Part shown: in pieces, positions 7,701-64,000 of the stretch
Numbering within the stretch: the stretch's first letter is position 1
Layout of the letters: every line of letters starts with the position of its first letter
NCBI GenBank assembly: GCA_009103225.1
Contig: RHPI01003389.1
Span: 62,001 to 126,000 of the forward strand
Source of the DNA: Chlorokybus atmophyticus
Lineage: Eukaryota; Plantae; Mesostigma and Chlorokybus algae
Direction: 5' to 3'
DNA length: 64,000 nt
Notes under the pieces: generated by a model
Databases searched by the model: none
Seen by the model: the letters and a program-made list of their open reading frames with translations, nothing else
Told to the model about the DNA's origin: nothing
Program-made: the position numbers and the translations under genes

Positions 7701-8409
7701 CGGCTTTTTGGCAAGCAAGACTTATGTGTTTAATCATGCTGTAACTGAGCATTGTTTGAACACAGCGTGTTACATTCCTTAAGAGTATACTTGACTTTTA
7801 TGTTGCGTTGCAATAGCGAACATGTCACAATATATTTTGCAAACATCTTAAATATCGTGTGTATCAAGATCATCATGTACACTATCGTGAAATTCATAAA
7901 ACACATATTAATGAATTATATATCAAGTATCATCAAATCTTATGATGTACGCTACCATGTCCGTATGCAAGCACTTAACGGTTAATGTATGTTATCATTC
8001 GTGTCTTTGCAATGCAGATTGAATGCATGGACATGGCAATTTTTCAATTCAATGACAAAGTTCGTTGGTACATCAGAATGATTTAGCTTATGATAACGAG
8101 GTATGATGATGATTAAAGTTAGACAAGTGATTTAATTGTGACAGAAAAAAAACATACATTGCCACGTGCCATGTTAATTCAAGAAAACAACCGCTATAAA
8201 TCAAGGCGTATAAGGTATTTGTTTACGCTTACCGCATGCGTTATCAATGCGTATGTCATATATGATTACACAATTTTATAAAATCAAGCTGCAAATCACA
8301 CATGCAAGTTTATTGCATGCACAATGGTTGATGTTATGCTTATTAATTCCTAAGCAACATCGTAACCAATGTTGATACATGTATGAGGATCCATTTTTGC
8401 TTTTTTTTT

Positions 8410-8854
8410 GGGGGGGGGGGGGGGGGGGGGGGNNNNNNNNNNNNNNNNNNNNNNNNNNNNNNNNNNNNNNNNNNNNNNNNNNNNNNNNNNNNNNNNNNNN
8501 NNNNNNNNNNNNNNNNNNNNNNNNNNNNNNNNNNNNNNNNNNNNNNNNNNNNNNNNNNNNNNNNNNNNNNNNNNNNNNNNNNNNNNNNNNNNNNNNNNNN
8601 NNNNNNNNNNNNNNNNNNNNNNNNNNNNNNNNNNNNNNNNNNNNNNNNNNNNNNNNNNNNNNNNNNNNNNNNNNNNNNNNNNNNNNNNNNNNNNNNNNNN
8701 NNNNNNNNNNNNNNNNNNNNNNNNNNNNNNNNNNNNNNNNNNNNNNNNNNNNNNNNNNNNNNNNNNNNNNNNNNNNNNNNNNNNNNNNNNNNNNNNNNNN
8801 NNNNNNNNNNNNNNNNNNNNNNNNNNNNNNNNNNNNNNNNNNNNNNNNNNNNNN

Positions 8855-8915
<61 letters not shown>
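8410..8915. other. Assembly gap (N run, about 8433-8854) flanked by a poly-G run and (CT)n
   Basis: Directly visible. The ORFs spanning it are artefacts. Confidence 0.97.
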
Positions 8916-8917
<2 letters not shown>

Positions 8918-11900
8918 TCCTCGCTCCCCCCCTCTCCTCGCTCCCCCCCTCTGCTGCTGCTGTTTTCTGTTGCGCTCTCTTTCTCTGCAACGCTGACTTT
9001 CATTGTGAGTGTGGCTTATTACCAAAACAAATGGCCTCTGTTTTGCAAGGTGGTGCTCTAACAACCTGACTAGAGCAGTGTGACAATAGCTACCACCAAC
9101 CTTCTGATGTTCGCTCTTGTCCGTGTCTTATACTTTAAGATAAAGCTACTTTGTTGCAAGCGCGCCAGGAGCTACAGAATTGTTCACAACTCAAGTTCTA
9201 TAGACGGTGGGGAGGCCACTACGTTCAACATCTGGAGGCGTACACACCAGGATATATATACATATTCCAATTCCCTCTGGTGAAGCCACTATGCCTGCAG
9301 ACACCATTGATATGTAATATATATCGCAAGATTTTAAAAAGCTTATTGGAATTATTGTTTTATAGCCATTTTAGTATTCAAAGAAAGAAAGCCGCAATCA
9401 TGATTGCAGGCCATCAAGCACTTTGTTTTTAAGGAAGAGCCCAACGAACGAATTATTAGAAAAGAGTAATCTTGGTTGCGCAAAGGTAAAACACTGCGCA
9501 CATCAAAATGTGTCACACGTTTCTAAGTGCGCATGGTTTGGAACCATGTCAGACACAATAAAATCACTACAAATACAAGTGTTAATCAGGTTGGCCGATT
9601 TTGCATTGAACAGTTATGGCGGCAGGGGGACAATATGTTATTGCCCCCACGGTGGTTGGACCACTTAAAATCATTGTGTAAAAACTTTCAATTGTCAAAC
9701 ACAACTTCGTTATAAATATGCCAAGAGACCAGTTCAGGTGGCCTTTACTTCAATATCGTCACTGTGATTTTTGCACATACACGTCGTTAAACATTGCAGT
9801 TGTATTTCTGGTCATTGTTAAGTTCGATAGCATTGTCGAGTTGTACATGATTATCTGTTATTGAGCTTAGCAAGAATTGCACATTTATATATGTTGATGT
9901 GCGCAGTGTTTCGCCGTTGTCAATGCGGCGCAATTGGGGGGTCATGCTTTCTGAGCTTAAAAATGTGCACATTGTCCTTGCCGCCCTTGTCACCGCCCCG
10001 CTCAATCAGACTGCAGTTCTCGCGCCCGCACAGCTGAATTTCTGTGGATTAGGGCAAATAGTACTGTACTTTAAGAATTAAAAACTGTGGGGTTGCGGCG
10101 GCGGCGGGGTTGTTAGCGAGGTGGGCGAGACTGGCGGCGCGGGGGCCTTCAACATGACGCAGCGGCAGCGGGCGCCAGGGGCGTTAAAGAAACGATTGAA
10201 TAATACTTACTCTTTGCTACCAGGATACAATTTTATGTATTTCAGTCATGGCAAAATCGTCGTCTTGTGCCACGGCAGATCGCATAATTTCATCTCTACG
10301 GAACGGCCTGGATTGATGTGTATTGTCCTCTGTGTGGAGATAGCCGCAGCATCAAGGGCATGTTTCTTTTGCACATGTAGAGTTGCTTATTCAACCAGGA
10401 CATCACTATGCTTTTGCTTGGCAACTTTCACATTGTATGGCACACATGTTGGTCATATATGTATTTATAAATAAAAAATAAACCATTAATCCGTGCACGA
10501 TGTACACGTGTACATCATGATTAAGCGCACATCGAATTGTGTCATGACAGTAAAGCATGTCAAGCTTGATAATGTCACTACAAATGCGAAGCCAACAACT
10601 ATATAACCGTTGAATGTCACGCGCGCTAAGTTTAATATCGCTCATAGCGTTTTCGCGCTCACGATCATGCCATTGCATGACGATTATGCCAAATCCAATT
10701 GCGTAACAAGAAACGCTGCGCAGCGTTTACCGCTACGCAATTGCAATGGCATTGCAATGTACAGATTATGCAAAGCTTAACATAGCATAGTAAGCTTGAC
10801 ATAAATAGCGTGATCGAAACATTGTGCATAGTATTATACACATCGCATAGGCGCAGTGCACAGAGTGATCGTGCGATCACAGCACGCCACAAGAGGATCG
10901 CATTCTTCTACATCCTACGCTCGCAAAGTAGGTCCTTTATAAGTTAAGGACAGGCAGAGCAGCAAGCCGATTGATGCATTAAAATCGTGCAGGTGGTGTG
11001 GCATGTGCGTACATTATGGTGAGACGGCGGAAATTTTCACGTGGTGGAAAAAGGGGAAATTATGGCGCGCTTCTTGTGTATTGCTGACCATTGATGGCTT
11101 ACCGCATGGCATTAAGCACACCAAACAGATTGTCCATATAGACATGTGGATGGTCGAGTTTTAATCAGCGATTGCAAACAGATCAAGTGCAGCCAATCTA
11201 CCTCCACATGACCGCACTAGTTACGAGGCGAAACACACGCGGCTACCCACGCCGCATCTGACACTTCATTGATAATCGAATCGTGTCACTGTTGACCATG
11301 GGCTTGAAGTTGGTTGCTCAATTGCTGCGGGTACTCAAAAAGAAATGGCATCAATGCTGGCGCTGACGCTGGAGTTTGAAGGGCGAACAACCTCCATTGC
11401 CGAATGCAACGGTTCCTATGTGTTGCGCTTGGTGGTTAAGATTGCCAATTGCGTGATGTGTGTACACAAAAAGGGATTGTAATCAATTTTATTCACACAT
11501 GTATGGTTTGCAACCATAGATAAGATGACGACACCGATGGTGGACCCTATATGGTTTTGTGTCGTACACACCATACTGTAGGCGTATGGCCGCGAGTGTG
11601 GTCCTAAGCCATAAACCGGTGGTCACAACGATTTATGACCACCACTGATTCATGCTTTTGCATGTGGTACGGTGCGCCAAATTGAACTTAAGCCGACGTC
11701 ATCAAACGGTCTTTTGAATATAATGCAAGTACTAGAATGTTTTAAAATAACATACAGACTGAGCTTTAACATCGCTCACACTGCGCATGTTATTCGTAAG
11801 ATCCGGTTATGCAATAATGAAATACTACACATTTTTAAATGTGTAAACAATGCAAAGCTTAGTTACGTCAACACAAGTATAAGAAATCTCACCGATCACC

Positions 11901-13819: not shown

Positions 13820-16800
13820 TCACAACATAAATTGACTGGACTCGTCCGGACCGCCTTGCTTGTGCTCAAATTTTGCAAACATGCTCTTGCCCTCGCGCCA
13901 CCGACGCTCTAGTGGAACAGGTCGGCCGGCAAGCATAGCGTCGACATTGCGCTCCACGGAGGCGTGTACACGCAGCTGCGTGGCGGAGAGCACCTCCACC
14001 AGCACTGGAAAGGTGGCAGCTCCGGAACGCTCCAGTTGGGTCTTTTTGTTCCCATGCTGCCTTGCCAGGGCATCCCCCAGGGTGACTGCTTGCACGCCAC
14101 CAACAAGAGGGCGCAGTTCTGCAGTTCAACATGCTTCAGTGTGCAAGAACCCGAGCATGCACACGCATAGCGCTGAACCTGAACCACAGATGTAATGCAG
14201 CACTCATGCGCGCACGCGCACGCAGGTGTGCGCGCACACGAGCGCTGCATCACTTTGGCTGTCACACACACATCCAAGGCATGTATCCTGCTCAAGCACT
14301 ACGCAGCATGTGCTGCCGCATCCATGCAGCATACCGGGATTCTTGAGCAGACCAGTCAGAGATAAACCGTGCGCTGTAGCAACCATTGCTACACCACGCT
14401 GTGCGATTGTTTGTGCAGCTTTGACTTCTTTAACATCGCTGATTTCGTCCACAATCACAACCTGCGAGCAGGGCGTAGTAATTGTAAAAAGTCCGCGAGT
14501 AGTCAAGCAGTCATAAGCACATTATCTGGCGGTGCACTCGTGCCAAGCTGGTCCAGTACTGCGACCATCATCTGGACATATACCTGTGGATTGTGATTCT
14601 GCACTGCCTCAACGAGCACCTCATGTTGCCGTGTGCGTTCCTGCACATGCATTCGCCTTGCACGGCCCACACAAGGATGGGGGACGTCCCCTCCTCCTGT
14701 TTGGTCATTTGCACACATTGAATCGCAGTCACAGCGCAGTGCTACCATATTACTGTGACAGTGTTAGTAAGGGTGTAACAAGACCTGCAATTTCGTTTGA
14801 TGTGTCTACAACAACGACCCGCAAGCGGAACTTTTCAGCAGTGACGCGTGCAATGTCCCTGAGGAGTGTAGTCTTGCCCACACCTGGCACGCGTGCAACC
14901 CGCATCAGCATCATGCATTTTGGTGATTGATGTTCGGTTTTCAGGGACCTGCTGCATACCTGGAGGTCCCAGGAGCAGAATGGACCGCGGATTGACACCG
15001 TCTGCAAGCTCAGCTGGGCTCGGCATCAGCCGGCTGATGTAATCAACAAGGATGTCAGCCGTGCCTTCGATGTGCCGTCCAATCCGGTACGTCAAGCCGA
15101 GCACCTGGTCGGGCGCAGTCATGAGCCATTGATGCAAAGGCACGAGCTTGGTATTGTTGTTTGCAAGAGCATACCTTCTCAGGGCCGACAATCTGCGAAA
15201 TGCGGTGGAGCGTGCCGGATATGCCGGCGCGATTGGACTTCAAAAACCGTACCCTCTGAGAATCAAGTGAATTGAGCGCCTCATCAATGTCAACGACAGT
15301 CCCGTCAAGAACCTCGTCGCCGCCATCTGTGCAAAGCCACACCCATTGAATTTGTGTTTAGATACTCGCTTTGAACAGTCATGTTGGCATCATTTCAGCG
15401 TATAACATGCCTGCGAATCTGAGCAAAAGTGGGCGTCCCGCATCGAGAATAACCTCCACAAGGCTATGGTCGTCTTGCAAAGCCTCCGTGCGCTTCACGA
15501 TTTGGTTCTGACAAATAACAGCATAGGTTAGTTTGCATGCACGCTAAGCTTCTTGCTGCAACTGGGTGCCAAATAGCATCCCTGAATGGTTGGCACCTGC
15601 AACTCTGCAGGCAGCACTGCGAGCAGACTGTTGAGCTCGGCATCCTTGGAATGTCTCCGCTCAACTTCCACTGGTGTAAACAGTGGTAGTTGTGTTCCAT
15701 AATCACCCCAGCCACTAGATGCTGGGGCGTCATTGTCCTCCCAGCCTGAGGTTGCTACCCTCGTTTGCTCATCTGTTGAGGTGGCGTGCGCATCAGTGTT
15801 GGATGCAGAGGTCTCTACAGAACTAGCTGTGGCTGGAAGCTCCTCTGACACTGGAGCTGGTGCATCGTGCTGCTCATGCTCATTGGCTTGAGCGTTGTCG
15901 TCACCCACGTCATCAGTAACATCAACATTTTCATCATCAGCGGTGTCGGCAGCCGCATCAGCCTCTAGTGCTAGTGCCGCATCTTTGTACACAGGTTGGT
16001 GTTTCTCATCAAACGTCAACCAGAGGTTGACACCAACAGGAGAATTGAAGGCTGACAGCGCCTGCTTGCATGGGTTGATCACGGCTGCTGTTTGCTCAAA
16101 CAAGCGCTGCTTGCAATCTTTGATGTAGTCAAGCTCCAGCTTGTCATACAAGGCAAGCAGCTGGCTGGCATCTGCTGCAGCATACTCCAGTTGCAGCCGG
16201 CTGAGCGGGCGTTTGGACCACTGGCGATGGTCAATTGCATCTTTCTGCACGTTTGCTGGCAGATTGTACTTCCGTAACAGCGCGTTTAATCCCTCTTTTT
16301 GTCCTTTCGTGATCTGTTTGACAAGCAACAGCAACGTTTATGCAACTCTTTCCGCATAGCATTGAAACCTTGCTGATTGTTTGAGCACAATGTACAGGTT
16401 GCTACAAGGTTACAGTCAAGTAACTCAAAGACAGCCATACCTGCTGCGCCAGGACTTGTGTATCCACGACACTCCGTAGAGTAATATCAAACTGGTGGTA
16501 AAGCGCCAAAGCATCTTGCCGTCCATCATGGACAACCTGCAGTTGGCAAAGGCATCAAGGATGTAAAGAGTAGCCAGGAAGCCATTGTCATGCACAACAG
16601 TCATACCTTAGTAATACGCTCATCCTCCAACAGCTTGCGCATCAAGTCAACAACCGCATTGTAGTCAGTTTCGCTTTTCAGCTTGGCACCCACTGGGTCC
16701 AACAGTGCTACAAACCCTTCAGCAGCCAGCTGCACAGCAGCCAAGCAGTCAGGAGCAGCAGCTAGTGCAGAGTACCACCATTGTGACTTAGACATGCCTG

Positions 16801-18323
16801 ATGTCACAGTTTTGGTACTGTAGCACATTCGTGCATACTCTTGTGAAGGACTAAACTTGGTCCAGCAACGCTTGCATTGCAATTGCAATGCATGAAACCA
16901 TGCCAAGTGACATGAGGTCCATACCTGAACAAGGCAAAGCGGGCCTGTCTTACTCAGCGCAATGCCCTCACAATCAATACCAATCCGGCGGCATGTCAGA
17001 AGCTGCTGTGTTGTTTGCCCGCAAGCAAAGCTCGTGTCTATGACGACCGTGCCTACAACACTGAGTTCAGTTCACAACCTTGTGTGTGTTTGCGGACAAA
17101 TGCCACCGACTCAAACCTGAAAGACCCTTGACGTCTGGGACTGCTGTCAATGACGGCATGTCGGTAATGTCCGTGATACGCCACTCAGCAACTTTCTTTG
17201 CTGGACCTAAACCACAGCTTAAACTCAAGCGCACGTGTTTGCCTCACATTTCATATCACGAGACATTGCACTGTGCGTTACCCGTGCTGCTGTGGCCGTT
17301 GCTGTAAGTGGAGCCATGGCGCGCAGCTAACTTGCCTAAGCCTTGCGTAAGCTCCACCACACCTGTAGGGTCCTGCGCGTCCCCGTTGCGGATGGAAAAC
17401 ACATCCGCATTGGCCATCAACACAGCCTTCAAGCCACCAGCGCTTTGCACATACTTCCAGGCAGCTGCATACTGAGGCCTGTTGAGATAATTCCCAAAGC
17501 TAGAGAGACCCACCCGGCCTCCACAAATATCGTGCAAAACAAACTTCATGACGTCAACCGTGTCTGCGGGTGAAGACAGCTGAGGTGATGTGTAACGCTT
17601 GTTTGGTGCCTTGCTCAAAGCTTTTGCTGGGGGAGCCACGAGGTGGGCGGGGTAAACTTGATTCTCAATTACAACTAATTTGTGCGGATAACTGGTGACA
17701 AAGCTTTGCAAGCTCATGCCGGAAGCCTTGATCGCATCTCTGTACGCCACATGCTCAGGCTCCGTCAGTGCCACGCCAATCTCTGAAGGCAGCATGCGAT
17801 TGTTCTTGGACGCAGATACGATTCTCAGCACGACATCGGCAGCTTCATCCAGCATTGTTGAGGTCTTGTCAAAGGTGCTGCTGCCGTTTGGGGAGGGCGC
17901 GCGAGCCAGTGGGTGATTGTACCTGCAGTTCAGGCCAAACCCACAGGTGCCAGACCTGGCATAGTATGCGCAGTCAGGCTGTCCGGGTCGCTGAGGGTAA
18001 CCCAGCGCAATGGGCTGGGGCACAGTGGTAGTGGCTTCGGTGGCAGCGGCAGAAGTGGATGCGAAAGACTGTGCCAGCGTGTGCTTGTTGTTGGCTAATA
18101 CAACAAGCACTTCACCAGAATCGTCCGGAATCAGCGTGAACTTGCTAGGGTGGTTCATCAGAAATGCATGAAGGCCACCAGCACGTTTAACCATGGCCAA
18201 GTTGATCGAGTTCTCACTTGATTGCAACAGGTCGCCCAGTGAGCGCAGAGTGACCTGGCCTCCTGACTGATGGATTGCCGTACATATGCCATCAATAGCG
18301 GCTTCTGTGACCAGCGCAATCAT
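13820..18323 (-). CDS. Multidomain protein, copy A: wHTH/LOTUS-like repeats + CCCH zinc finger + DEDDy (EXD1/Egalitarian-like) 3'-5' exonuclease + Ycf45/SpoIIIAA-like AAA ATPase
   Basis: CCCH: [29 protein letters not shown]. Exonuclease motifs: IGIDCEG (about 16980), [21 protein letters not shown]. Walker [20 protein letters not shown], then [26 protein letters not shown] and Walker B VVIVDEIS. Additional upstream exons are possible. Confidence 0.8.
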
Positions 18324-20552
18324 GCTGTCTGCAAGTCAACACCCAGGAAGGTAAGCGTGTATAGTGACAGCCGTGCAATGCCAAGCTCTACTATCAGGCG
18401 GTATAGCTGCGAAATGCTTTGGCTCACCGCCACTCAGTGTGCTGGAACAGACGTGAGTCTCACCTGGTTTGATGCAGCTGCCGTTTTGATACCGTAGCTC
18501 ACTCACAACCTCCGGTTTGCATGCAGCTACGCCCTTACCATGCAAGCTAAGATCTGCTGGCATCAATCAGCACCACTTCACTTCAGTTCTCGCCTTGAGA
18601 CCAGGCATGCTACACTCTCACAACTGTGAACTCGATATGCAAAAAGCTTGCTTACCTCAGACTGTACCATTCCAATGGACAGGGTCGTGTTTGCAACATC
18701 TGCACGCCTGTCCTCAACGTCCGGCACCTCCTTAACCACTGCATTCACACGCTGCCTACTGCGCATTGTCTATAAGCAACATCCTTGCGAAGAGATGTAC
18801 TGACCTTCCAAGCAACAGCCAGAGCACACAAGTGTGCTTTGCGGCAGACAATGCACAGCTGACCTGCCAGCAGTGCAGCGGGCTGGAACTGACCTTGCTG
18901 GTTGGTTGCGCCTGGTGACCACAGGGAACTTAGTGACAAAGACGATGGCCCTGTCTGCAAGGCACACTACGAGCCATTCCACAACCCACCAACCTGTCCA
19001 TAGATGAACACCAGATGTAAAAGGAAGGAAGCAGCTGATGGTAAGCCCGACTGAACACAAGCAGACACAGCTGTGAGCACATGTGATGCAGAGTGTGCTG
19101 CCGTTGGGACAGGCATGGTACACAGGTTGACCAGCATATGCTGAGATTTTCTGTCCTTGCTACTTGTTGTAACTCAGGCCCCAACCCGTGTTTTTGTATT
19201 GTCTATCAACAACACAGACTGCACGACCGCAACTTGCTGCTTATGGTTACAAGAATGCAGCACTGGCTGACATGTGGCACCCTTATAGCTGGTGGTGATA
19301 TGACAGCAGGTTATCCTGTCGTTTGCTGCTTGACATGCATTGCACTGACGACAACCTAGGTAGCAGCAGCATTTTTATGGACCAGACCAACCACATGCGA
19401 GCATAACCGCGCTGTACATGCATCGTAACTCATCATGTGCTGAGTGACGACAGTGACTGGACTTGTGCTGCCCTTTTGCCACTGGCAATGCTGTAATCGA
19501 CCACTGACGACGTGCATGAGACACAGCTATCTACCCAAAACGCTGCTCAACGCTGCCGAGCAATGCAGAGTAACCCTGCACATGGGACTTGCACGCTGCT
19601 ACGTTGCGCTTGGATGAACACTCGATGCCAATGCGGTTGGTACCACAGCCAGCTTGCGCAACACACCAATACAGCACGAAGCATTGTCCAACGACTTGCA
19701 AGTGCAGCCTACCAGCAATGCATGGACTGGCGATCCACCACAGACAAGAGCGTGATTTGCATACGCATGCATGCCGGCCACAGGTTGTTTAATCCAAGCA
19801 CTCACCCGGACGGTTGGCAAAAACAAGAGCGCTTTGGTGGCACATCACATCATCAACGTTGTTACCATGTGCGCAAAAGTTGAAACGTCTGAGCGCACAA
19901 CTGCCGATCAAGCCTGGGAGAGGAATAAGCATTCAGCAGCGGCCTGCAAGCCAGTGTCAGCTGCTGTTATAGCTGGCGATAAGAGATTGTGTCAAGCAGT
20001 GCTAAGCGGTTGAATGGTATCAGCTTGTTGACGAGGCATGCGAGAGATCTTTGCTAAAGCCGCTTATGAGCTGCTGATCTGACAGACTACAGCCATGCAG
20101 AGCAGCGTTGTGTACCACGCAATTGCATGCTTAGCGACATGATCAGATCGGCTGTGCAGCTGAAACAGTGTGAGCCTGACATCAACAACAGGCCGACCAC
20201 AAGCATGCGATCACACATTACACACTGACATTGCCACCAGCGCCAAGCCCAGCAGGCTGCATGCACCGAAAGAAACGGAGCCTAAATCACAGCAAAGATC
20301 CTGCAGGTTGCCCTGCCAGCAAGCACATTCCAAGAAAGAGAGGCACAAGGTACCTGACCGACAGACATCTCCACCGCCGCCCACTTCGCGCTCTCCGCCG
20401 CCGCCGGCGCGGCCTGTGTGAGAAGTCGAATTGGTACTGAGCTATTCGTCGCATTGCAGAGAGGCGGAGGTGGGCGGCGAGGTGAGGGAGGGATCTTAAG
20501 GGGGAGGTGGGTGAGCCGGCGGGGAGGGGCGTCGGACGCTGCGGTGTTGGGG

Positions 20553-46734: not shown

Positions 46735-48087
46735 GTCACGACTGTTTGGGGAGGATGTCATGAACCCTAGAGGTATGCCCGAACACCGCACATGCGAGCA
46801 GCTCACATGTTCAGGTTGTCCTGTGCACAGTCACATCACTTGGTGGGACACGCACGACGTGACAGTAGTGCACGATGCAAACTTGCTGTGTACGCTCTGC
46901 TGGAGTGTGGTTAGCCGATAAGTCAGACCAACAGGGGAGGAGAGGGTGCTGCGGAGGGAGTTAGGTAGGCAAGCGCATGCGAGGACATTGACAACGCCGA
47001 CCAGGCCAAGGAAGCGCTTGGTCTGCAGTACATTGCTGTTCAGCTGAAACTTGGAGCCTCCAGCACTTCAGTTTGCTGCTGCTGAGGGTTGAGGCAAGCT
47101 TGCCTCCTCTGAACTAAGCTAGGCTGAGCATGCACGCATGCACGCACACAGTGCAATTGTAAGAATAAGCTAAGCAAGTCGGTCGTCAGCTGGTGAAGTG
47201 ACTTGGTTCACGTTGTCGGTTGGCTGCTTGTCCTCCAGTAGTGTGGTGGTCGTCATGCCTTGACTAGCTGCAAGCCAGCTGTGCACTGGTCGAGTGAATT
47301 AACAGCTCGTAGCGTCTGCCAAAGAAACAAAACTAGAACAACAGTAGCCTCCTTCTACCTCCTGTGCCCCGTCTCTCAACAGGTGATGATTCATGATTCC
47401 GTACTTGTAAGATACTTGTAGCACGGCACGCGCAACGTCATGCAAAAACTTCCTGTTGACTCTGTACTACTGTTGCTGCGGTCACGCACAGTACGGTATC
47501 CTATTCACGTATATCCAACGTGCAACACGCCTGCAAGCAACTACACTGCCGGCAGGTCAGCTGGGTGCTGTTTTGGAACATGCTTGCTCGCTTTCACCTG
47601 CTGTATGTTGAGACTTTAAAGCTCGTGCTTTACCAGCACAACAGACACAACCCGCTCATGTACATACACAGTTCCAGGAGAAGTTTGAATGCTAGTTACG
47701 AGGATGCAGGACAGTGCACGGGTCATGGGGCAGTTGTTGCCAAAGTGATGCTGTGCAGAGCGGTGGTATTGTCCGGGTAAGTTTGCTTGTTGCTTGGGCT
47801 CGACAAGCGCGGTTTGAGGATGCCTAGATGTTAGGCGAGGAGATTTGATGCAGATGCCAGCAGGTCTCAGCTTGCCTGGTAAGGGCTCACTCTGCATGAC
47901 AGTGGACTTTGTGAGTGAGTGACGGTGTCAAGACCACGTGCATCATTAAACTAGGTGAGACCTTTGCCAACGCTGAGTGGCAGTCAGCTGACTTGGTTAG
48001 CAGCCTGTCAATGGTGCCTCTTGGGTGAATTGGCATTTCATAGCTATCTTTTGCACCTTACCTACTTTGCGCTCATGTGCAGACAGC

Positions 48088-51000
48088 ATGATTGCGCTCG
48101 TGGACAGCATTTACACGGCAATCCAGCAGTCAGGAGGCCACATCACTTTGACCTCACTCGGTGAAAAATTGAAGTCGAGGGAGAGCTCGGTCAACTTGGC
48201 CATCATTAAGAAGGCCGGCGGCCTACGCGCATTTCTGCTAAACCACTCTAGCAAGTTCACACTGAATCTGGACGACTCTGGGAAAGGGCTTGTCGTTGCA
48301 ATCAACAACGAGCACATGCTGGCACAGACTTTGGCATCAACTGCTGCCACTGCCACCGGACATGGAGCCTCTGTTACCGTACCCCAACCCATTGCGCTGC
48401 CGCTCCCTCAAAGACCCGGAGAGCCCGACTGCCCATACTATGCCTGGTCTGGTACTTGTGGGTATGGCCTGATCTGTAGGTACAACCACCCAACACTCGC
48501 ATGCGCGCCCTCCCCAAACAACAGCAGCACGTCTGACAAGGTTGCAGCAACACTAAACGAAGCCGATGCTGTGCTGGGGATCGTGTGCACGTCCAAGGAC
48601 AAGTCCTACAGCAACGGCCACAGCATCACAGGTAGTGCAATGCTAGTAACAAGCATGGTCATTCACGACAAGACAGCTTTGAGGTCACCAAACATATACG
48701 CTTCAGGTTGTATTGCAGGGCCACCAAAGACTGCTGCATACACGTGGCGTATCAAGGGCAATCTCGAAATGCCATTGGTGAACAACAAGCAGACTCCCAA
48801 AACGCCTGTTCAGCTTGACAAGAAGGACACGGCAGTAGCTGAAACGCCTCAGGCTGCAACGACGCCAGCTGCTCAGGACCAGAAGCCTGTCGAGAGCGTT
48901 CAGGCCTCTGGCAAGCAAGGGGATGCCAGCAAAGCCAATGGCGCCAACAACAAGACACCTGCAACAGACGTGAAGACGCCCGCCAAGGATGCCAAGACGC
49001 CTGCAGGTGGGAAGGATGCTAAGACGCTTGCAAACGACCACAAGGGTCTTTCAGGTTTGAGTCGCAATGGTGCGCAACCACACGCAGGGTTGCACACTCA
49101 ACTTCAACAAGTTCTTTGTGTTGCAGGCACAGTTGTCATAGACACCAGCTTCGCTTGTGGGCAGACAATGCAGCAGCTTCTGACATGCCCCCGCGTTGGC
49201 ATTGACTGTGAGGGCATTTCATTGAGTAAGACAGGCCGGCTTTGCCTTGTTCAGGTATGGACCGTGTGTTATTTGGCATGCGTTTATGCGGGCTTTGGCA
49301 TGCAGTACCAAGGCAACGCGTGCACTGCTGGACCACATTCAGTCCCTTACACGTGTATGCACAACAATTACATGCTACAACATTACCACTTTACACATAA
49401 AACACACTGAAGTAGCTGCTGCTTCTGACTGCTTGGCTGCTGTGCAGGTGGCTACTGAAGGGTTTGTAGCGTTGTTGGACCCCGTGGGTGCAATGCTGAA
49501 GAGCGGAACTGACTACAGTGCAGTTGTTGGCTTGATGTGCAAGCTGTTGGAGGATGAGCGTATCGTCAAGGTATGGCTGGTGTGCTTGATAGAGACTTCT
49601 AGGCTGCACTTTGCATCCTTCACGCCCCATTGCAACGTGCAGGTTGTGCATGACGGACGGCAAGATGCTTTGGCACTCTACCACCAGTTGGGTATCACTC
49701 TGCGGAATGTTGTGGATACGCAAGTTCTGGCTCAGCAGGTATGTCTGCATTTAACTACTGCAACGTTGTAGCAACTTGTAAGCGTGTACTGAAGCTACTT
49801 CAGCAGCATTGCAATGCTGTGAGGTTTTGCGTCAGCGTGATGTGTATGACAAGCGTTGCTTGTCATACAGATCACAAACGGTCAGAGAGAGGGATTGAAC
49901 AAGTTGTTACAAAAGTACAACCTGCCAGCGAACGGGCACAAGGACGCTATGGACCATAGCCAGTGGGCTAAGCGCCCACTCAACCAAGTTCAGATTGAAT
50001 ATGCTGCAGCGGATGTCAACCAGCTGCTCGCCTTGTATGACAAGCTGGAGCTTGACTACATCATAGCTTGCAAGAAGGGCTTGTTTGAGCGAACAGCCAC
50101 TGTCATCAACCCATGCAAGCAGGCGCTGTCAGCATTCAATACCCCCCTCGGTGTCAACCTCTGGTTGACGTTCGATGAGAAACACCACGCTGTATACAAA
50201 GATGCAGCTCTGGCGGAGGCTGATGCCGCTGCCGACACCGCTGCTGATGGAAGTGGTGAAGCTATTGATGGCGTGGGTGATGCCAATGCTGAAGAACAGC
50301 ACGATGCACTGTCTCTAGTGTCAGAGGAGCTTACATCCACAGCTAGTTCTATAGAGACTTCTGCATCCGGCTGTGACGCACACGCCAGCACACCAGATGA
50401 GCACATGAGCGTAACGTCAGCCTGGGAGGACAATGACGCCCCAGCAGCGAGTGGCTGGGGTGCTGTTGAAACACAACTACCAATGCTTACACCAGTGGAG
50501 GTTGAGCGGGTACATTCCGAGGATGCTGAACTCAACAGTCTGCTCGCTGTGCTGCCCGCAGAGTTGCAGGTGCCAACTACTCGGAGATGCCAGTTGTCAT
50601 GAGTTGCAGCAAAAATCTCAGCGTGTATGCAAACTGATCTATGCTGCTGTTTCAGAACCATGTTGTCAAGCACACGGAGGCCGTTCAAGACAGCCATAGC
50701 CTTGTGGAGGTTGTTGTCGATGCTGGACGCCCGCTTGTACTCAGATTTGCAGGCAAGTTGCACCTGCAGTGTTCAAGCATGACTGCTTCAAGAGAGTCTC
50801 ATACACACATGCAGTTGTTGTGTCTTTGTGCAGATGGCAGCAATGTGGTTCTTGATGGGACCGTCATCGACATTGATGAAGCGCTCAATGCGCTCAATAA
50901 CCAAAGCATTGAGTTCCTGAAATCAAATCGCGCTGGCATATCTGGCACGCTCCACAGAATCTCGCAGATTGTTGGCCCTAAGAAGGTATGCTTGGGCAAA

Positions 51001-52338
51001 CAACGATACAGAGCTCATGCCTGTGCATGATTGGTTGTATGCGCCCAATCAGGTGCTGGGATTGACTTACCGGATTGGACGGCACATCAAAGGCACAGCC
51101 GACATCCTCGTTGATTACATCAGTCGATTGATGCCGAGCCCTGCTGAGTACGAAGCCGGTGTCAGTCCGCAGTCCATTCTGCTCCTGGGACCACCAGGTA
51201 TGGAGCGGGTGCCTCAATACCCAACATCCTTTACTTACCCTATAGCTTGCTACTGATGTGCATTGCACGCGTGCCAGGTGTGGGCAAGACAACACTCCTC
51301 AGGGACATCGCACGCATCACTGCTGAGAGATTCCGGGTGGTTATTGTCGACACATCAAACGAGATTGCAGGTCTCGTGCCCTTCATAACAATGTTACGAT
51401 TGGCTGATGCTGTGCTGTGACTTTATCGTCTCATTATCGTCTCATGTGTGCGCACGACTAACAGGGGGAGGAGATGTGCCCCATCCTTGTGTGGGTCGTG
51501 CAAGACGAATGCATGTGCTGCAACGCACACAGCAACATGAGGTTCTCCTTGAGGCAGTCCAAAACCATACTCCAGAGGTATGTCCAGTCCACACAATGGT
51601 TGCCATGCTGGAGCAGCTTGGCGCAAGTGCATTGCTAGATAATGTGCTTATAACTGTATGACTATTCGCGGAGCGCTTAAACTCCCTTATGCCCTGCTCT
51701 CAGGTTGTTATCGTGGATGAAATCAGCGATGCCAAAGAAGTCAAAGCTGCACAATCAATCGCACAGCGTGGTGTAGCAATGGTTGCTACGGCGCATGGAC
51801 TGTCTCTTACCGGTCTGCTCAAGAATCCCGGTATGCGGCATGGGTGTGGCAGCACATGCTGCTTTAGCAGGATACAAGCTTTGGATGTGTGTGTGGCGGC
51901 GAAAACAATGCAGCGCGCATTACAGTCGTCCAAAGTGCGCGTGTGCGCATTACATCTATGTGATTCAGCAAGCTACATGCTCAGGGTTGTGCGTGCATGT
52001 TCCAGTTCTTGCGCACTGACGAAGCATGTTGATCTGCAGAACTGCGGCCTCTTGTTGGTGGTGTGCAAGCAGTCACCCTGGGTGATGCCCTGGCAAAGCG
52101 GCACGGGAACAAAAAGACCCAACTTGAGCGCGCAGGCGCTGCCACGTTCCCAGTGCTGGTAGAGGTGCTCTCCTCCACGCAGCTGCGGATACACGCATCC
52201 GTGGAGCGCAACATTGATGCCATGCTTGCCGGCAGACCTGTTCCAGTAGAGCGACGGTGGCGCGAAGGGAAGAGCATGTTCGCAAGGTTTGAGCACAAGA
52301 AAGGAGGTCCGGACGAGTCTGGTCATTTCACGTTGTGA
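48088..52338 (+). CDS. Multidomain protein, copy B (paralog of 13820-18323): wHTH/LOTUS-like + CCCH + DEDDy exonuclease + Ycf45-like AAA ATPase
   Basis: The exon series matches copy A: [78 protein letters not shown]. Confidence 0.8.
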
Positions 52339-54043: not shown

Positions 54044-55640
54044 CTAGTCGCCAGTGTCTGGCGCTCGCGAGAGGGCATCTGCCTTCTGCAGGCAGGCCCG
54101 CGGTTGCCAGCAGCAGTGCAGCTGCCAGTCCTGCTGCCACAACACTTCCCACAGGTTGTACAGCTCCCCCCTCAGGTATGGATCACTTGCAGTCAGCTTG
54201 CTGAGGTTGCTCAGCGCTGGCTGGCAGTCCCCCTGCAGGGTGAGCGCCACATGTCGTAAGCTTGGCCGCCGACGCGCCAGCGCGCATAGCAATCTGATAC
54301 ATGCCATGGCTTCTTTCACAGACGGAGCTAACGTCAGCGCCTGCTCGGCAAAGTTACCCTGCACCGGGCCCCATGTGTAACAGCCCCCCAGCCATGCGTG
54401 CCAGATGCATCTGCTTGCAACAACACCGATGCTGGCGGCTTCCACCAGGCGCAGCCCTGAGCTGCATATGCGCGCCAGCAGCCACACCAAGATCTGCGTG
54501 GTATCCGCTGGTGAAGTGAAAAGGCTGTCCCAGCTTGACGCACTGGCCAGGGGTTTCAATAACGTGCGAGCAAACAGCAGAACAGGCGGCAAAGCAAGCC
54601 GCAGCGACACCAGCTTGCCTGCTACGCTGGCTAGCTGGCGAGCCGTCAGCTGAGGGTGCGCAAGCAACGCAGCAATGTCCTCCTCAAGCTGCTGCAGCTT
54701 GTGAGTAGGCACGGCAAAGACACCTGTTTGTGTGTCCACCATCAAGCAGCTTCAATAGTTGAATTGGATAGGGGTTGCACTTAGGCAGCCCAAAGAAACA
54801 CCCAAGAGCAGCGAACATTTGCATTATCAACTTCGTTCTCCACATCACATGCAACTTGCGGTGGTGCGCCAGGTGCATGTCATCAATGTATTCTAAGGTG
54901 CCGAAGCCTCGCATCCGCATTGGTCCGTAAATCACTTGTTGCGTGATGGTGAAAGCATAGCATGCTATACTCAGGCCAAAGGAAAGAACATTCCATTGAA
55001 ACACTTGATCTTGGTACGATATACACAAGAACCTGCGATGTTGCGGTTGTACGGGAATGTGATAGTAGCCCGACTTCATGTCAAGGCTAGCTTGCCACCA
55101 TCCTTTGTGCGTGTAGTGGAGAATATCGAATAACTTCTTGTAATGGAAGAGAACGTGCGCTAGAAAGAGATTCACATAGCGCAAGTCAACTATTAACCTG
55201 AGTTTAGGTTGCGTAACTACACCCATCCCCGACACCACTTGCGGAGCTGCATCCACGAGCACAGGTGTAATACCACCAGTGCACACCAAGTTGCTCAGTT
55301 CATTCTGCACGAATGCAGCGTGCTCTATCACCGAGGCTCTATTACGGAGCTGCACCGAGTGGGAGTGCGTTTTAACAACGCTGCTCTGCGGTGCGCGCAG
55401 TTCAGGCCCTCCTCCCTCAACATCATTTCTACTTGTTTCCGCTTTTTGGGGGAAGCAGCAGCCGTGCCCACAAAACGCAATGGCAAACCATGCCGTATCT
55501 AGCCCAACACTTTCTCCGCAGCTGGATGCTCCGTCCAGCATTCCCAAGCCGCTGCGTGGTGAGTTGGCAACGCAGCCGTAAAAAGCGTGGCATCATGCAT
55601 GATGCCACGTATTTGACCCAACCACTCAGCCTCTGTACAG
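54044..55640 (-). pseudogene. DIRS RT-RNase H pseudogene
   Basis: The N-terminal motif AAWECW..KVLG*IRHGLPLRF contains a stop and is out of frame with the RT core. A second frameshift lies at about 54770. Confidence 0.85.
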
Positions 55641-58601
55641 TCCGGAAGAACAGGTTCTGCTGCCAGGCAGGAGAGCTAGCGCAGCACGTGCATCACAACG
55701 CGTCACTGCTTGTCTTGAGACCAGGGCGCCGACAGCCTTGGCGTGGGCCATACCGCAGGCGACACTGCTGCTGGCTCCGCCAGCAGAAGGGGTTGCTGTG
55801 CGCGCAGGTGCAAGGCCTGCTCTGCAGCGTGTTCCGGATGTTCCTCGCCTGCAGACAGCTCCGGCGCCCACGAGACATCCTGCTGGTCGCATGAGGGTGC
55901 TGCGCATTGTCTTAGGTCATCAACTGCAGCAGAAACAGCAAATGTGAGAGGTGCAGTTCGTGCAGGCGCGGCTATGGGCTCGTCGCCTGATGACGCAGCT
56001 ACCGCGACAGCCTCATGCTGAGCTGCAGCGAGAGACAATATAGCGTACTCAGCTGCAGAGGACGACAGACGACGCTGTATCTTAGCAGCAGAACATTCTG
56101 CCGAAGATGCCGCAGCTATGGCGACGGGCTGGTCACGCACCAAGCCATGCTGCAACAGCACGGCGGACTGTGCTGTACTGGACAGCTGCGGTGCCAAGGC
56201 TGCAGGTGGTTCAGCGCGCGTCAGTGACGTGGTCACAGGTCGTCGTGCAGTCAGGGTAGAGTCGCATGCGTGTGGCGACACTGCATGCGTCGTAGAGACA
56301 CTGCAAATGCGCCTGCAGCGGTGGGCCTCAGGTGCCATGTGACACAGCGACACTGCCAGACTGTGCGGAGCAGACTGCAGGCGCATGCACATGCAACGCA
56401 CAGCCAGCACAGCAGAGCAGTATGGGCGTATATACATGTATGACAAAGGGGGAAAGACAGTGTTGGCCACACACGCACAGTGTGGGCACAGCTGACAGCC
56501 GCCCACCAACAACTAGCTAATCACATAGCTTAACTGCTCGCATTTTCTTTTGCCGGCGCTGCGGCATTCTTTCGTCGGGGGCTTGTCCTGCTGACGTCCA
56601 CCTCCCGCATTCTGCTGCAGTTGGTCATGGCGTCTGTCCTTGTCCATATACGTCAGCGTATCTTGCTCACGCCGTCTGTCACGGTGACCAGCATTCTTGG
56701 TGCTCACAATCCTGAGCGTGGCATAATAAGCAACAAAGCGCGGCATGCATGCAGCGCAGATGTACACAAGGGCACGGCTACTGGCCACCATGCACAGGCC
56801 GCCCTTGAACAGAAAACAAACCTGGCAACGTGCCGGAACTAACTTCGATGTTGTGCAGCCGTGCGCCACACTTCACTGTACAGGTTCAGGTCCTCGTCGA
56901 TGAGACGAGCCTCCGTATATGTCTTCGAGAGCTTTGTCTTCTCCAAATTCGCGGAACAAGCTAGCTTCTAGCAGCACATGTACATATGCTGCCATGAGCA
57001 GTACCTTGAATCCGTGATGAGCTCGGAACACCTCCACATGTTAAGGAGGCCTCGCATGGACAAGTCATTGGTGATGCGGTTTACAATTTTTTGCCGCACC
57101 CGCACATAATGAGATGTGCGAGTGGATTGCACGACAAGCATGCCGTTGGGTGCAAGCACCATGCTACTGGTGTTGGCGAACCCATCTTCATCCTCGATGG
57201 GCGGTGCGAGAGTGTGCGCGGGGGCATCCATGAGAAGCACACATGAAGCGGGAACTGGCGCTTTGAGTTATGAGGGTAGGAGTGTGGTGTTGAGGGTGCC
57301 TAGTGCGGAATCCTCCACGCCATCAACACGCGCTACCAAGCATTCACAACTCATACTAGGTATGTACACTACCTTGTTGACGAGGACGTGGAGGTCACAA
57401 GGAGGAGCCACGTCCTCACTACTCGCCGCCCCCATCGTCCTCGCTTGAGTATAAGGCCATGTAGCTCTCCACGGCAGCGGTGAGGGCCTGGAAGGCCCCA
57501 GCTGCAAAGTCACATTGGCACTGCCAACGGCACTGGCAGTGCCGGCGCCCTGCGCTCCTGACAGCACGCAGGGTCTCCATGCGGGAACGGCGGGAACCGG
57601 AGGAACCGCTCTCTCCGGAGGAAGGGGTGGAGGTGGCTGACAGGGGAGAGGTGGGGGAGGTTGCGCCGCCTGAAGAAGTGGTGGAGGCGCGTGAGATGTG
57701 GCCTCCAGTTGTGGGGGAGAGCGGCGGGAGGAATGAGCGCGGCTCCGTACTGGGGCTCTGCGCCTGGCAGGGCTTCGGCTCCGACTGTGGCTGCAAGTCC
57801 TGCTGCGGCTGGGGCTCTGGCTCCGGTTCCGCTCCCACAACGGCATCGATGATGACGCCGTCAGCGAGCTGCTGCGCTGAGGGCGCTGCAGATGGTGGGA
57901 GCTGCGACGCGGGCTCCGTTGGGGCTCCGCTTCAGGCTGCAACTCCGCCTGTGAGGTGGGGTCCTGCTGCGCCTCCGGTGCGGGCTCAGGTGCTGGCGCC
58001 AAGGCTTCCTGAGGGGCTGCTGGTGCCGGTGCTGGCTGGTGCGGTGGGGAGATGCCGACCCACCTGCCATGCGGGTTGGGAAAAGTGCGGCGCAGGGTGG
58101 TGCGCTCCCTGCCGAACACCATACGCAGGCGACGCGCCCGCGGTGTTGCCGCCGGGTCCTGCAGGAGAGGAGGCAGGGACACGACGATGACGTCACACCA
58201 CACACCTGCCTCACACACCTGCAGCAAAGCTTGGCGGGTTTGAGGGGCTGAGGGGTCGCTGACTCCGACCTCCACCACTAGACCTCCTGCAGACCGAGCA
58301 GCGGACCAACGCCAATCATGAGGCAATCATGCAGGGGACGGGTGTTGAAGTAGCGGACATCCACCTGCTTGGTGATGTCTATCGCCAGCAGATCATCCAC
58401 AACAACACCCAAAGCTACTTGCTGGCGCCAAGCACACAGCTGCACAGGGCGAAAACTGCTCCCCAGCAGCTGCTGCTCGACGCCGTCCTCCGGTGGCAAG
58501 AGAAAACGCTTTGCCGTCTGTCCTGGAGGCTCCAGCGGTGACCAAGGATTGTGCGCCGCTGAGCCAGGACCGTTCTGCAGGCCGACGGCTCACACTCGCA
58601 T

Positions 58602-58908
58602 TTGAGCAAGCACGACGTTGATGGCGCCCACAGCGTCAACAATAACAAGAACAGCTGCTGCGGCTTCAGCCGCAGCAGTTGTTCACTTGCCACGCTTGGC
58701 AAGGTTGCCAGCTGCCCGGCTTTTGGGCACCGCCCATCAGGCCGACGTCGCTGGCTACGGCGGCGTCATGCCCGAGGGGCAACATGACGCGACCGCGCAC
58801 ACAAGGTGCGCACAAGCATACCGTTTCTTGTGCGTCCTCAGACGCAGCAAAGGCGCGCTTACAGAGAGACACTCGCTAGCCTATAAGCTCTCGAGTATTA
58901 ATGCGTGA
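58602..58908. repeat. About 310-bp segment repeated in inverted orientation at 63375-63681
   Basis: The two segments are alignable as reverse complements. The ORF track gives near-identical MMAPTA... peptides on opposite strands. Confidence 0.9.
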
Positions 58909-59093
58909 AAATATTGTAGTGAAGTGTAATTGAAATCTGTATGGTGTGGTAGATCAAAAGGTTGTCACAATTCCAGAGGGCGAAAAGAGTTTAAAATTGT
59001 TTTGTTCTCTAGATTTTGCATCACGTTATGGCACAACGTCTACCTTCCACTTAGCACTGTAGTGCATCATAGTACGAGTCAACACTAGGCATG

Positions 59094-63226: not shown

Positions 63227-64000
63227 TATGCTAGTACGCACAGCCTAGATGAGGACTCTTATCCACGGCTGAGCCTCACTGCCAAAGTTTAATCTAGTCA
63301 GGTAAGCAAACGTCTCAAGCTAAATAAGCTGGTTAGCATTAACTATCATATCATCTGGTTGTAAGTTCAGATGTTCACGCATTAATACTCGCTAGCTTGT
63401 AGGCTAGCGAGTGTCTGTCTATAAGCACGTCTTTGCTGCATCTGAGGACGCACAAGAAACAGTTTGCTTGTGCGCACCTGTTGTGCGCAGTCGCATCATC
63501 TTGCCCCTCGGGCATGACGCCACCGTAGCCAGCGATGTCGGCTTGATGGGCGGTGCTTAGAAGCCGGGCAGCTGGCAACCTTGCCAAGCGTGGCAAGTGA
63601 ACAACTAATGTGGTTGAAGCCGCAGCAGCTGTTCTTGTTCTCGTTGGCGCTGTGGGCGCCATCACCGTCGTGCTTGCTCAACCGCGCACCCAACCCAACC
63701 ACCCGCGCTGCCGCCACCGCTGTTGCCACCTCCTTCAGCACAACTGTTGTGGTGTAGCTGACGGCTACAGTATGGGCAGCACCGTCCACGTGGCAGCTAT
63801 GGCTCACGTGATCTTGTGCGCACTCAGTCGTCGGATGTGCATTTCGCACCGTTTCCTAAGGCTATGCTAGTACGCACAGCCTTAATGAAGACTCTCATCC
63901 ATGGTTGAGCCTCATTGCCGAAAATTGATCTATTCGAGCAAGCAAACATCTCAAGCTGAATAAGCTGGTTGTTAACATTAACTATCATCTGGCTCCAAGT
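63227..64000 (+). repeat. Tandem direct repeat with about a 636-bp period, carrying the inverted copy of the DIRS 5' region
   Basis: 63227-63364 aligns with 63863-64000 (TATGCTAGTACGCACAGCCT...). The repeat runs off the window end. Confidence 0.85.

Follow-up and report, generated by a model that had tools for sequence, protein, structure and literature searches.

In Drosophila, the Egalitarian protein (Egl) starts with three LOTUS-like winged helix-turn-helix (wHTH) modules named 'Egl domains' (ED1-3), which are carried on flexible linkers (PMC13186709). They are followed by a domain homologous to 3'-5' exonucleases (ExoHD) and an adjacent tetrahelical domain (XAD), and these parts jointly provide an RNA-binding pocket in which the exonuclease fold binds RNA 15 Angstrom from the putative catalytic residues (PMC13186709). 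Eukaryotic fusions of OST-HTH domains to CCCH and other RNA-binding domains are also known (PMC2848206). The layout of three wHTH plus exonuclease was found described for Egalitarian only, an animal mRNA-localisation factor. EXD1, Mut-7 and Nibbler act in small-RNA pathways, Nibbler by trimming RNA 3' ends. ATPases of the SpoIIIAA/Ycf45 type are present in cyanobacteria, Chloroflexota and plants as well as in plastid genomes. They are related to ring-forming secretion and SpoIIIAA ATPases and normally bear an R3H domain that binds single-stranded nucleic acid. The literature on ycf45 that was found consists only of plastid-genome gene lists, with no biochemical role assigned. The present analysis concerns a gene of the alga Chlorokybus atmophyticus, called copy A, that lies at positions 13820-18323 of a 64,000-nucleotide (nt) stretch of contig RHPI01003389.1 (positions 62,001 to 126,000, forward strand), hereafter the window. 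It codes for wHTH-like repeats, a CCCH zinc finger, a DEDDy 3'-5' exonuclease and a P-loop ATPase of the SpoIIIAA/Ycf45 type.

The domains of the protein are known and their combination is new, with a resemblance to Egalitarian that was unexpected. The initial annotation, made from the DNA letters of the window, did not recognise its four-part architecture. The N-terminal two-thirds follow the published Egalitarian plan, while the fusion to the ATPase, the insertion of a CCCH finger and a catalytic site with all its residues still match no recognised precedent. The reading put forward here, to which a probability of roughly 0.45 is given, is that the protein would be a self-contained, ATP-powered enzyme for the trimming of RNA 3' ends or for RNA decay.

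Gene organization and transcripts

Copy A is read from the minus strand, between an ATG at 18323 and a stop codon at 13820-13822, and has 13 coding exons defined by spliced transcript contigs. The coding exons sum to 3,228 nt, corresponding to 1,075 codons and the stop, with consistent phases and no internal stops. The contigs originate from three runs (X1, X2 and X3) of one organism, produced in two studies; the type of record was guessed, and the runs are taken as transcript assemblies because their contigs skip introns. The 13 introns that they define lie within 14119-18463, one of them in the 5' leader. After small shifts of the joints, 12 introns have GT-AG splice sites and one is GC-AG. 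The latter (15327-15410) follows exon 7, and its GC donor is kept at 50753-50833 in copy B, an inverted paralogue described further below. The pieces of the gene proposed in the initial annotation, visible as stop-free stretches in three frames, are present in this model, which adds the small exon 2 that had been missed there (17117-17206). The exons are the following, all on the minus strand and, for exons 2 to 12, bounded by transcript joints:

18464..18566, minus strand: mapped part of the 5' leader exon (joint 18328/18464 in X1)
18328..17282, minus strand: exon 1, with the ATG at 18323
17206..17117, minus strand: exon 2 (90 nt)
17052..16925, minus strand: exon 3
16729..16607, minus strand: exon 4
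16536..16441, minus strand: exon 5
16313..15597, minus strand: exon 6 (717 nt)
15507..15411, minus strand: exon 7
15326..15175, minus strand: exon 8
15104..14960, minus strand: exon 9
14883..14785, minus strand: exon 10
14696..14584, minus strand: exon 11
14461..14335, minus strand: exon 12
14118..13820, minus strand: exon 13, with the stop at 13822..13820

The leader intron (18329-18463, 135 nt) separates the 5' leader exon from exon 1. Record 3 of X1 continues for 574 nt beyond the joint 18328/18464, and the 5' leader is therefore long or composed of several exons. The mapped leader exon stays open in the frame of exon 1, with a further ATG at 18563 from which the protein would be about 35 residues longer; the ATG at 18323 is favoured as the start because copy B keeps the same MIALV start. 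Since this ATG leaves no room for a targeting peptide, the protein would be likelier to reside in the cytosol or the nucleus than in the plastid.

The exonuclease and the ATPase are parts of one polypeptide, encoded by one expressed nuclear gene whose mRNA is spliced. The junction is found in exon 6, a single open frame that begins shortly ahead of exonuclease motif III, goes on to encode a conserved segment and then an acidic linker, and reaches the first helix of ATPase homology. The splice 15597/15507 then joins this exon, in phase 0, to the next ATPase exon. It is contained in a 743-nt contig of X2, which runs on to the exon with the Walker B motif, and in a 997-nt contig of X1, so that the link between exonuclease and ATPase in one spliced gene, as claimed in the initial annotation, is crossed by contigs from two studies. 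The X1 contigs differ from the window by 17 synonymous, 11 non-synonymous and 3 non-coding changes, which are differences between strains.

There is very little probability that two separate proteins are made instead, from an exonuclease transcript ending in exon 6 and an ATPase transcript starting in the same exon. Such an arrangement would account for the break of the X1 contigs within exon 6, where two of them meet with an overlap of just 26 nt (16125-16150). It would also fit the rise in contig depth toward the 3' end (28, 59 and then 134), but contig depth cannot rank the parts of a gene and a 3' bias is usual in poly-A libraries. The open frame is, however, unbroken through the 717 nt of exon 6 and over the splice into the ATPase exons, and copy B keeps the same continuous arrangement. 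The copy A frame has no methionine at residues 450-842, whereas the ATPase homology begins near residue 715. The ATPase half thus has no AUG of its own, and an internal transcript would forfeit the N-terminal domain of the ATPase.

The exonuclease and the segment that follows it

Sequence searches and modelling were carried out exon by exon or domain by domain, and the positions of motifs were computed on the spliced frame. The exonuclease half of copy A comprises:

16130..17206, minus strand: DEDDy 3'-5' exonuclease, exons 2-6, about amino acids (aa) 348-555 (Pfam DNA_pol_A_exo1)
16964-16978, minus strand: motif ExoI, IDCEG, aa 403-407 (sequence)
16513-16530, minus strand: motif ExoII, HDGRQD, aa 464-469 (sequence)
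16170-16184, minus strand: motif ExoIII, YAAAD, aa 537-541 (sequence)
15978..16133, minus strand: conserved post-exonuclease segment, aa 554-605, 52 residues (ratio of non-synonymous to synonymous change, dN/dS, 0.23)
15699..15977, minus strand: acidic linker in exon 6, rich in Ser, Thr and Ala, aa 606-698 (composition)

The profile of the family DNA_pol_A_exo1 (PF01612) is matched from position 3 to position 170 of 173 by three collinear pieces, of which the last reaches 31.6 bits for a cut-off of 23.6. All five DEDDy catalytic residues are present and in order, in agreement with the claim of a nuclease with all its catalytic motifs (IDCEG, HDGRQD and YAAAD), and copy B keeps every motif. Among the sequences of solved structures, the best match of exon 5 is Egalitarian (4.8e-4), with EXD1 at 0.043. 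Exon 6 matches an 'ancestor of diDNase' construct (2.4e-4), Egalitarian (2.5e-4) and a Mut-7 homologue (7.5e-4), while exon 3 gave nothing relevant against the Protein Data Bank (PDB) sequences. By these similarities the exonuclease belongs to the neighbourhood of Egalitarian, EXD1 and Mut-7; its active site is intact and the enzyme is apparently active.

The conserved segment that follows the exonuclease is possibly the counterpart of the helical domain adjacent to the exonuclease of Egalitarian. It is followed by the linker, whose composition is strongly biased: residues 606-700 hold 24 Asp and Glu and 1 Lys or Arg among 95 residues.

The ATPase and its bacterial relatives

The C-terminal part of the protein is a complete ATPase module with these features:

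13898..15698, minus strand: SpoIIIAA/Ycf45-type P-loop ATPase, from the end of exon 6 to exon 13, about aa 699-1050 (tblastn and Pfam)
14867-14969, minus strand: Walker A motif GPPGVGKTT, aa 861-869, which spans an intron (sequence)
14444-14461, minus strand: Walker B motif VVIVDE, aa 935-940 (sequence)
14366-14380, minus strand: ATAHG motif (sequence)

When two bacterial homologues were aligned to the window by tblastn, collinear matches of 29-74% identity were obtained to exons 7-13, the highest value (up to 74%) being that of the exon with Walker A. The match covers residues 18-324 of a 539-aa homologue from Dehalococcoidia, and the corresponding part of a Synechococcus protein is matched too. 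Spore_III_AA (Pfam) and TIGR02858 match the ATPase exons in pieces, those of TIGR02858 scoring 23-30 bits. When the last exon was used to search genomes of bacteria and archaea, relatives were retrieved from Dehalococcoidia, Ktedonobacterales, Synechococcus and others, with full-length matches at 43-55% identity. The claim of a complete Ycf45/SpoIIIAA-type ATPase is borne out by this full-length collinearity and by the presence of Walker A and Walker B, and R3H is absent. The algal protein stops about 25 residues past the ATPase homology and its last exon has no Pfam match, hence neither PF25516 nor R3H. Both bacterial relatives examined (L003:2248-3864 and L031:2215-3624) have a 79-residue PF25516 domain ('PTPase') after the ATPase, and one of them, L003, also has R3H, with PF25516 placed between it and the ATPase. 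No solved structure was detectable by sequence for the ATPase, the comparison of its last exon with the PDB sequences giving nothing relevant.

Membership in SpoIIIAA proper was considered and rejected: with the TIGR02858 equivalog, whose cut-off is 281, the complete bacterial relatives themselves reach no more than 66-70 bits. The bacterial relatives also show a faint match to a type IV pilus ATPase.

The genomic context of the bacterial Ycf45-type ATPase genes was surveyed in 108 anchored loci. Thymidylate kinase is encoded directly downstream in 62 of them, and in 46 the gene directly upstream belongs to an unnamed family whose proteins have about 318 residues and lack a Pfam match. PdxT and PdxS are found further upstream. 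LdpA is encoded upstream in a cluster of 10 loci, an example of which is a cyanobacterium.

A function on DNA rather than on RNA is quite improbable. The protein would then process DNA ends by means of a WRN-exonuclease-like nuclease and a ring ATPase of the FtsK, HerA or secretion kind, in repair, recombination or the control of mobile DNA. DNA_pol_A_exo1 does include DNA exonucleases, and WRN as well as polymerase proofreading domains are found among the weaker matches of exon 6. R3H domains bind not only RNA but also single-stranded DNA, and the gene directly downstream of the bacterial ATPase gene in the 62 loci serves DNA-precursor synthesis. However, the accessory domains of the algal protein (LOTUS-type wHTH and CCCH) and the nearest relatives of its nuclease (Egalitarian, EXD1 and Mut-7/Nibbler) are all associated with RNA, the substrate that the proposed trimming or decay enzyme would act on.

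The wHTH repeats and the CCCH finger

Exon 1 codes for the N-terminal region, which is divided as follows:

18096..18323, minus strand: repeat 1, wHTH of LOTUS/Egalitarian type, aa 1-76 (AlphaFold2 model and structural matches)
17913..17972, minus strand: CCCH zinc finger, C-x8-C-x5-C-x3-H, aa 118-137 (Pfam zf-CCCH)
17637..17867, minus strand: repeat 2, divergent and wHTH-like, about aa 153-229 (alignment with repeats 1 and 3)
17364..17570, minus strand: repeat 3, wHTH-like, about aa 252-320 (BLASTP against repeat 1)

The three repeats align with one another. Repeats 1 and 3 are 36% identical over 44 aa (BLASTP E 4e-7). Repeat 2 is the least well supported, with E 0.023 in the comparison with repeat 3, and shows the same order of helices and strands in a low-confidence model of exon 1. 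This single-sequence model is poor, with a predicted local distance difference test (pLDDT) value of 47. The AlphaFold2 model of repeat 1, made with the alignment of the three repeats, has a pLDDT of 85.5 and a predicted template modelling (pTM) score of 0.68. It was compared exhaustively, by VIA-align, with 48,161 PDB representatives. The main matches, with Z-score, root mean square deviation (rmsd) and number of superposed residues, are:

TDRD5 LOTUS: Z 10.3, rmsd 2.0 Å, 73 residues
Egalitarian ED1: Z 9.4, rmsd 2.2 Å, 70 residues
TDRD7 LOTUS: Z 9.4, rmsd 2.4 Å, 71 residues
Tejas LOTUS: Z 8.9, rmsd 2.4 Å, 68 residues
MARF1 LOTUS: Z 7.9, rmsd 2.3 Å, 65 residues
Generic winged helices: Z at most 7.7

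The poorer model of exon 1 also ranks LOTUS and Egalitarian first. The lead of these domains over generic winged helices is modest. In the ESM Atlas, the joint best match of repeat 1 (TM-score 0.73) is a nematode 'Egalitarian protein homolog' cluster, which combines PF23713 with PF01612; a plant PORR cluster ties with it at 0.73 and an OST-HTH cluster follows at 0.68. The Pfam family WH_Egal (PF23713) matches repeat 1 with E 0.022 and 15.7 bits, under its cut-off of 27 bits, and OST-HTH (PF12872) gave no match at E up to 10, either with exon 1 or with each repeat alone. A profile of the three repeats retrieved no LOTUS chain from the PDB sequences, exon 1 retrieved nothing relevant from them, and the ESM Atlas search by sequence features yielded no usable match for exon 1.

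As judged from its model, repeat 1 is a wHTH of LOTUS/Egalitarian type; repeat 3 is by sequence a homologue of repeat 1, and repeat 2 is probably of the same wHTH kind. The three LOTUS-like repeats of the initial annotation are thus upheld in part. Repeat 1 is structurally LOTUS-like, its model being closest to solved LOTUS domains (Z 8.9-10.3 for TDRD5, TDRD7 and Tejas), and repeat 3 is its homologue, but repeat 2 is weak and an OST-HTH match by sequence is lacking. The predicted CCCH finger was recovered by zf-CCCH (PF00642) with E 1.9e-7 and 31.3 bits, above the gathering cut-off of 20.5.

An inverted paralogue and the pattern of selection

The window holds a second gene of the same family, about 30 kb from copy A, that the initial annotation did not mention:

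48088..52338, plus strand: copy B, inverted paralogue of copy A (exon-by-exon tblastn)

The two copies are 65-95% identical in amino acids, exon by exon. Copy B has the same exon layout and conserved splice sites, and its length changes are all in frame. Exons 3-13 read through 689 aa without a stop, with the Walker motifs and the catalytic residues kept. Inverted repeat pairs between the two loci are confined to the gene spans. Copy B holds repeat 1, the CCCH finger, the exonuclease and the ATPase, and has lost most of repeat 2 and the whole of repeat 3 through an internal deletion. Copy A, with three wHTH repeats, and copy B, with one, make up a natural deletion series for probing the function of the repeats. 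A Lys/Thr/Pro-rich stretch is found in the open frame 48001-49299 of copy B, before the exonuclease.

Selection was estimated by the Nei-Gojobori method from the comparison of copy A with copy B, for which dS is about 0.5. The dN/dS values are:

Exonuclease: 0.14-0.15
ATPase: 0.15
CCCH finger: 0.18
Post-exonuclease segment: 0.23
Repeat 1: 0.33
Two linkers: 0.7 and 0.9 (0.70 for the acidic linker of exon 6, where copy B differs by insertions and deletions)

Purifying selection acts on the folded domains, and the linkers evolve almost neutrally. As low values are found in the domains and high values in the linkers, selection maps onto the proposed domains.

These values also bear on the view that the protein is an Egalitarian-like RNA adaptor or chaperone, which is considered unlikely. 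The wHTH repeats, the CCCH finger and the exonuclease fold would then form an RNA pocket, the catalytic residues would be kept for a purpose other than decay, and the ATPase would remodel or assemble ribonucleoproteins (RNPs) or move RNA. Three wHTH with an exonuclease of the same subtype is the layout of Egalitarian, whose catalytic residues are dispensable (PMC13186709). Egalitarian is moreover the best solved match for exon 5 and ties for the best with exon 6. Yet the five DEDDy residues are kept in both paralogues in spite of a dS of about 0.5 and with a dN/dS of 0.15, as is expected of a working active site.

Proposed function

As an RNA 3'-end trimming or decay enzyme, the protein would use its N-terminal wHTH repeats and CCCH finger to select and hold an RNA, a task carried out elsewhere by LOTUS, Egalitarian and CCCH domains. 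The exonuclease would shorten or degrade the held RNA from its 3' end. The ATPase may oligomerise the protein, with ATP being used to feed or unwind the substrate or to strip protein from it. The Egalitarian-like RNA-binding and nuclease module would stand in for R3H as the nucleic-acid handle of the ATPase. In functional terms, this organization would resemble WRN, in which an exonuclease of the same superfamily accompanies a motor, or MARF1, in which a nuclease accompanies LOTUS repeats. The role suggested in the initial annotation, that of an ATP-driven effector of RNA trimming or silencing, is plausible.

Several observations weigh against this proposal. To our knowledge, the SpoIIIAA/Ycf45 family is without characterised nucleic-acid motor activity, and exonucleases of the same Pfam family act on DNA too, as in WRN and in polymerase proofreading. 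No single contig carries both YAAAD (16170-16184) and the ATPase exons. Repeats 2 and 3 have no confident models, and copy B manages without both. Foldseek searches with both models of the N-terminal region gave no E-value below 0.09, although chains of LOTUS and Egalitarian ranked with the best in TM-score and weak E-values are usual for a domain of 75 residues. Finally, Egalitarian itself works as an RNA adaptor for which the catalytic residues are dispensable (PMC13186709).

That the ATPase is naturally fused to a nuclease and to domains of the RNA-binding kind strongly hints at an action of its family on nucleic acids. A broader proposal, which is regarded as doubtful, is that the exonuclease-ATPase core represents an undescribed eukaryotic family for ATP-powered RNA processing with interchangeable RNA-recognition heads, and that its LOTUS-exonuclease half shares ancestry with Egalitarian and EXD1. 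If this were true, the factors of animal germline RNA transport and of the PIWI-interacting RNA (piRNA) pathway would descend from an ancient catalytic RNA-trimming module, which some lineages would have coupled to a ring ATPase of bacterial origin.

Distribution of the architecture

The literature yielded no account of a Ycf45/SpoIIIAA ATPase combined with an exonuclease, or of the whole domain combination. In a large HMMER search with exon 1, the top 150 matches were all proteins with multiple CCCH fingers, aligned over residues ~54-170, and no orthologue of the wHTH part was visible. A word-index protein search with exon 1 and with the exonuclease part of exon 6 returned nothing, a blank that says little for a method blind to proteins longer than 1.75 times the query. 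The C-terminus of the ATPase gave full-length matches only at 39-55% identity in bacterial and archaeal genomes, metagenomes and viral contigs. The exonuclease exons had no match in 126 bacterial and metagenome loci, so that neither a bacterial operon precedent nor a close relative elsewhere was found. In the ESM Atlas, a bacterial ATPase retrieved eukaryotic SpoIIIAA-type clusters from diatoms and streptophytes, none listing an exonuclease, which is a weak negative for clusters of at least 50 members. Taken exon by exon, these searches are compatible with novelty of the architecture and do not establish it.

Genomic surroundings

The gene was initially placed beside a transposon-rich region. 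A reverse-transcriptase fragment and short repeat pairs are indeed found in the window, but the region is no more than modestly rich in transposons and none of these features abuts copy A, which is not inside a recognisable element. The fragment lies downstream of copy B:

54687-55547, minus strand: reverse-transcriptase fragment (Pfam RVT_1, E 8e-11)

Large open frames at 54047-58326, near this fragment, have no Pfam match, and neither have those between copies A and B. The short repeat pairs are located at 44.6-45.7 kb, 60.5-61.1 kb and 58.6/63.4 kb. An inverted pair of 316 nt (58597-58912 and 63371-63686) shows 90% identity over a distance of 4.5 kb. The region 8000-10000 has a G+C content of 33% and carries open frames longer than 200 codons in several frames and on either strand, as is typical of low-complexity or repeat sequence.

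Comparison with known systems

The ATPase module is collinear over its whole length with the Ycf45/R3H SpoIIIAA-like ATPases (PF19568) of cyanobacteria, Chloroflexota and plastids, with 43-75% identity in the conserved exons. It differs from them in that the nucleic-acid-binding parts of the algal protein are N-terminal and the PF25516/R3H tail is absent. WRN likewise unites in one polypeptide a winged helix, a nucleic-acid motor driven by ATP and an exonuclease from the same Pfam family. Its motor is, however, a RecQ helicase of superfamily 2 and its substrate is DNA, so that the likeness is one of function and not of family relationship. MARF1/Limkain-b1 and other LOTUS proteins share the association of a LOTUS array with a nuclease and further RNA-binding domains. 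MARF1 differs by its NYN endonuclease and by having no ATPase, and the algal protein has no Pfam OST-HTH match. EXD1 and Mut-7/EXD3/Nibbler (PDB 5fiq, 7jw2) belong by sequence to the same subfamily of the DEDDy fold (0.043 for EXD1 with exon 5, 7.5e-4 for Mut-7 with exon 6), but they have other accessory domains and none is fused to an ATPase.

The most extensive likeness is to Egalitarian (PF23713 and DNA_pol_A_exo1; PDB 9rvy, 9uju), in which three wHTH are likewise followed by an exonuclease fold of the same subtype and then by a conserved segment. The order of parts is shared up to about residue 605 of the algal protein. ED1 of Egl superposes on algal repeat 1 with Z 9.4-10.2 and an rmsd of 2.2-2.3 over 70-75 residues, and the ExoII stretch of Egalitarian, VIHDCRNDAANLYLQF..DTQ, resembles the algal one. 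The algal protein differs from Egalitarian by the CCCH finger between repeats 1 and 2, by the full ATPase at its C-terminus and by having no recognisable region for binding BicD or dynein light chain. The layout that the two proteins have in common could be ancient or convergent. The Egalitarian-like layout of the algal protein, together with an active site that is intact, suggests how an ancestral form with catalytic activity may have been built.

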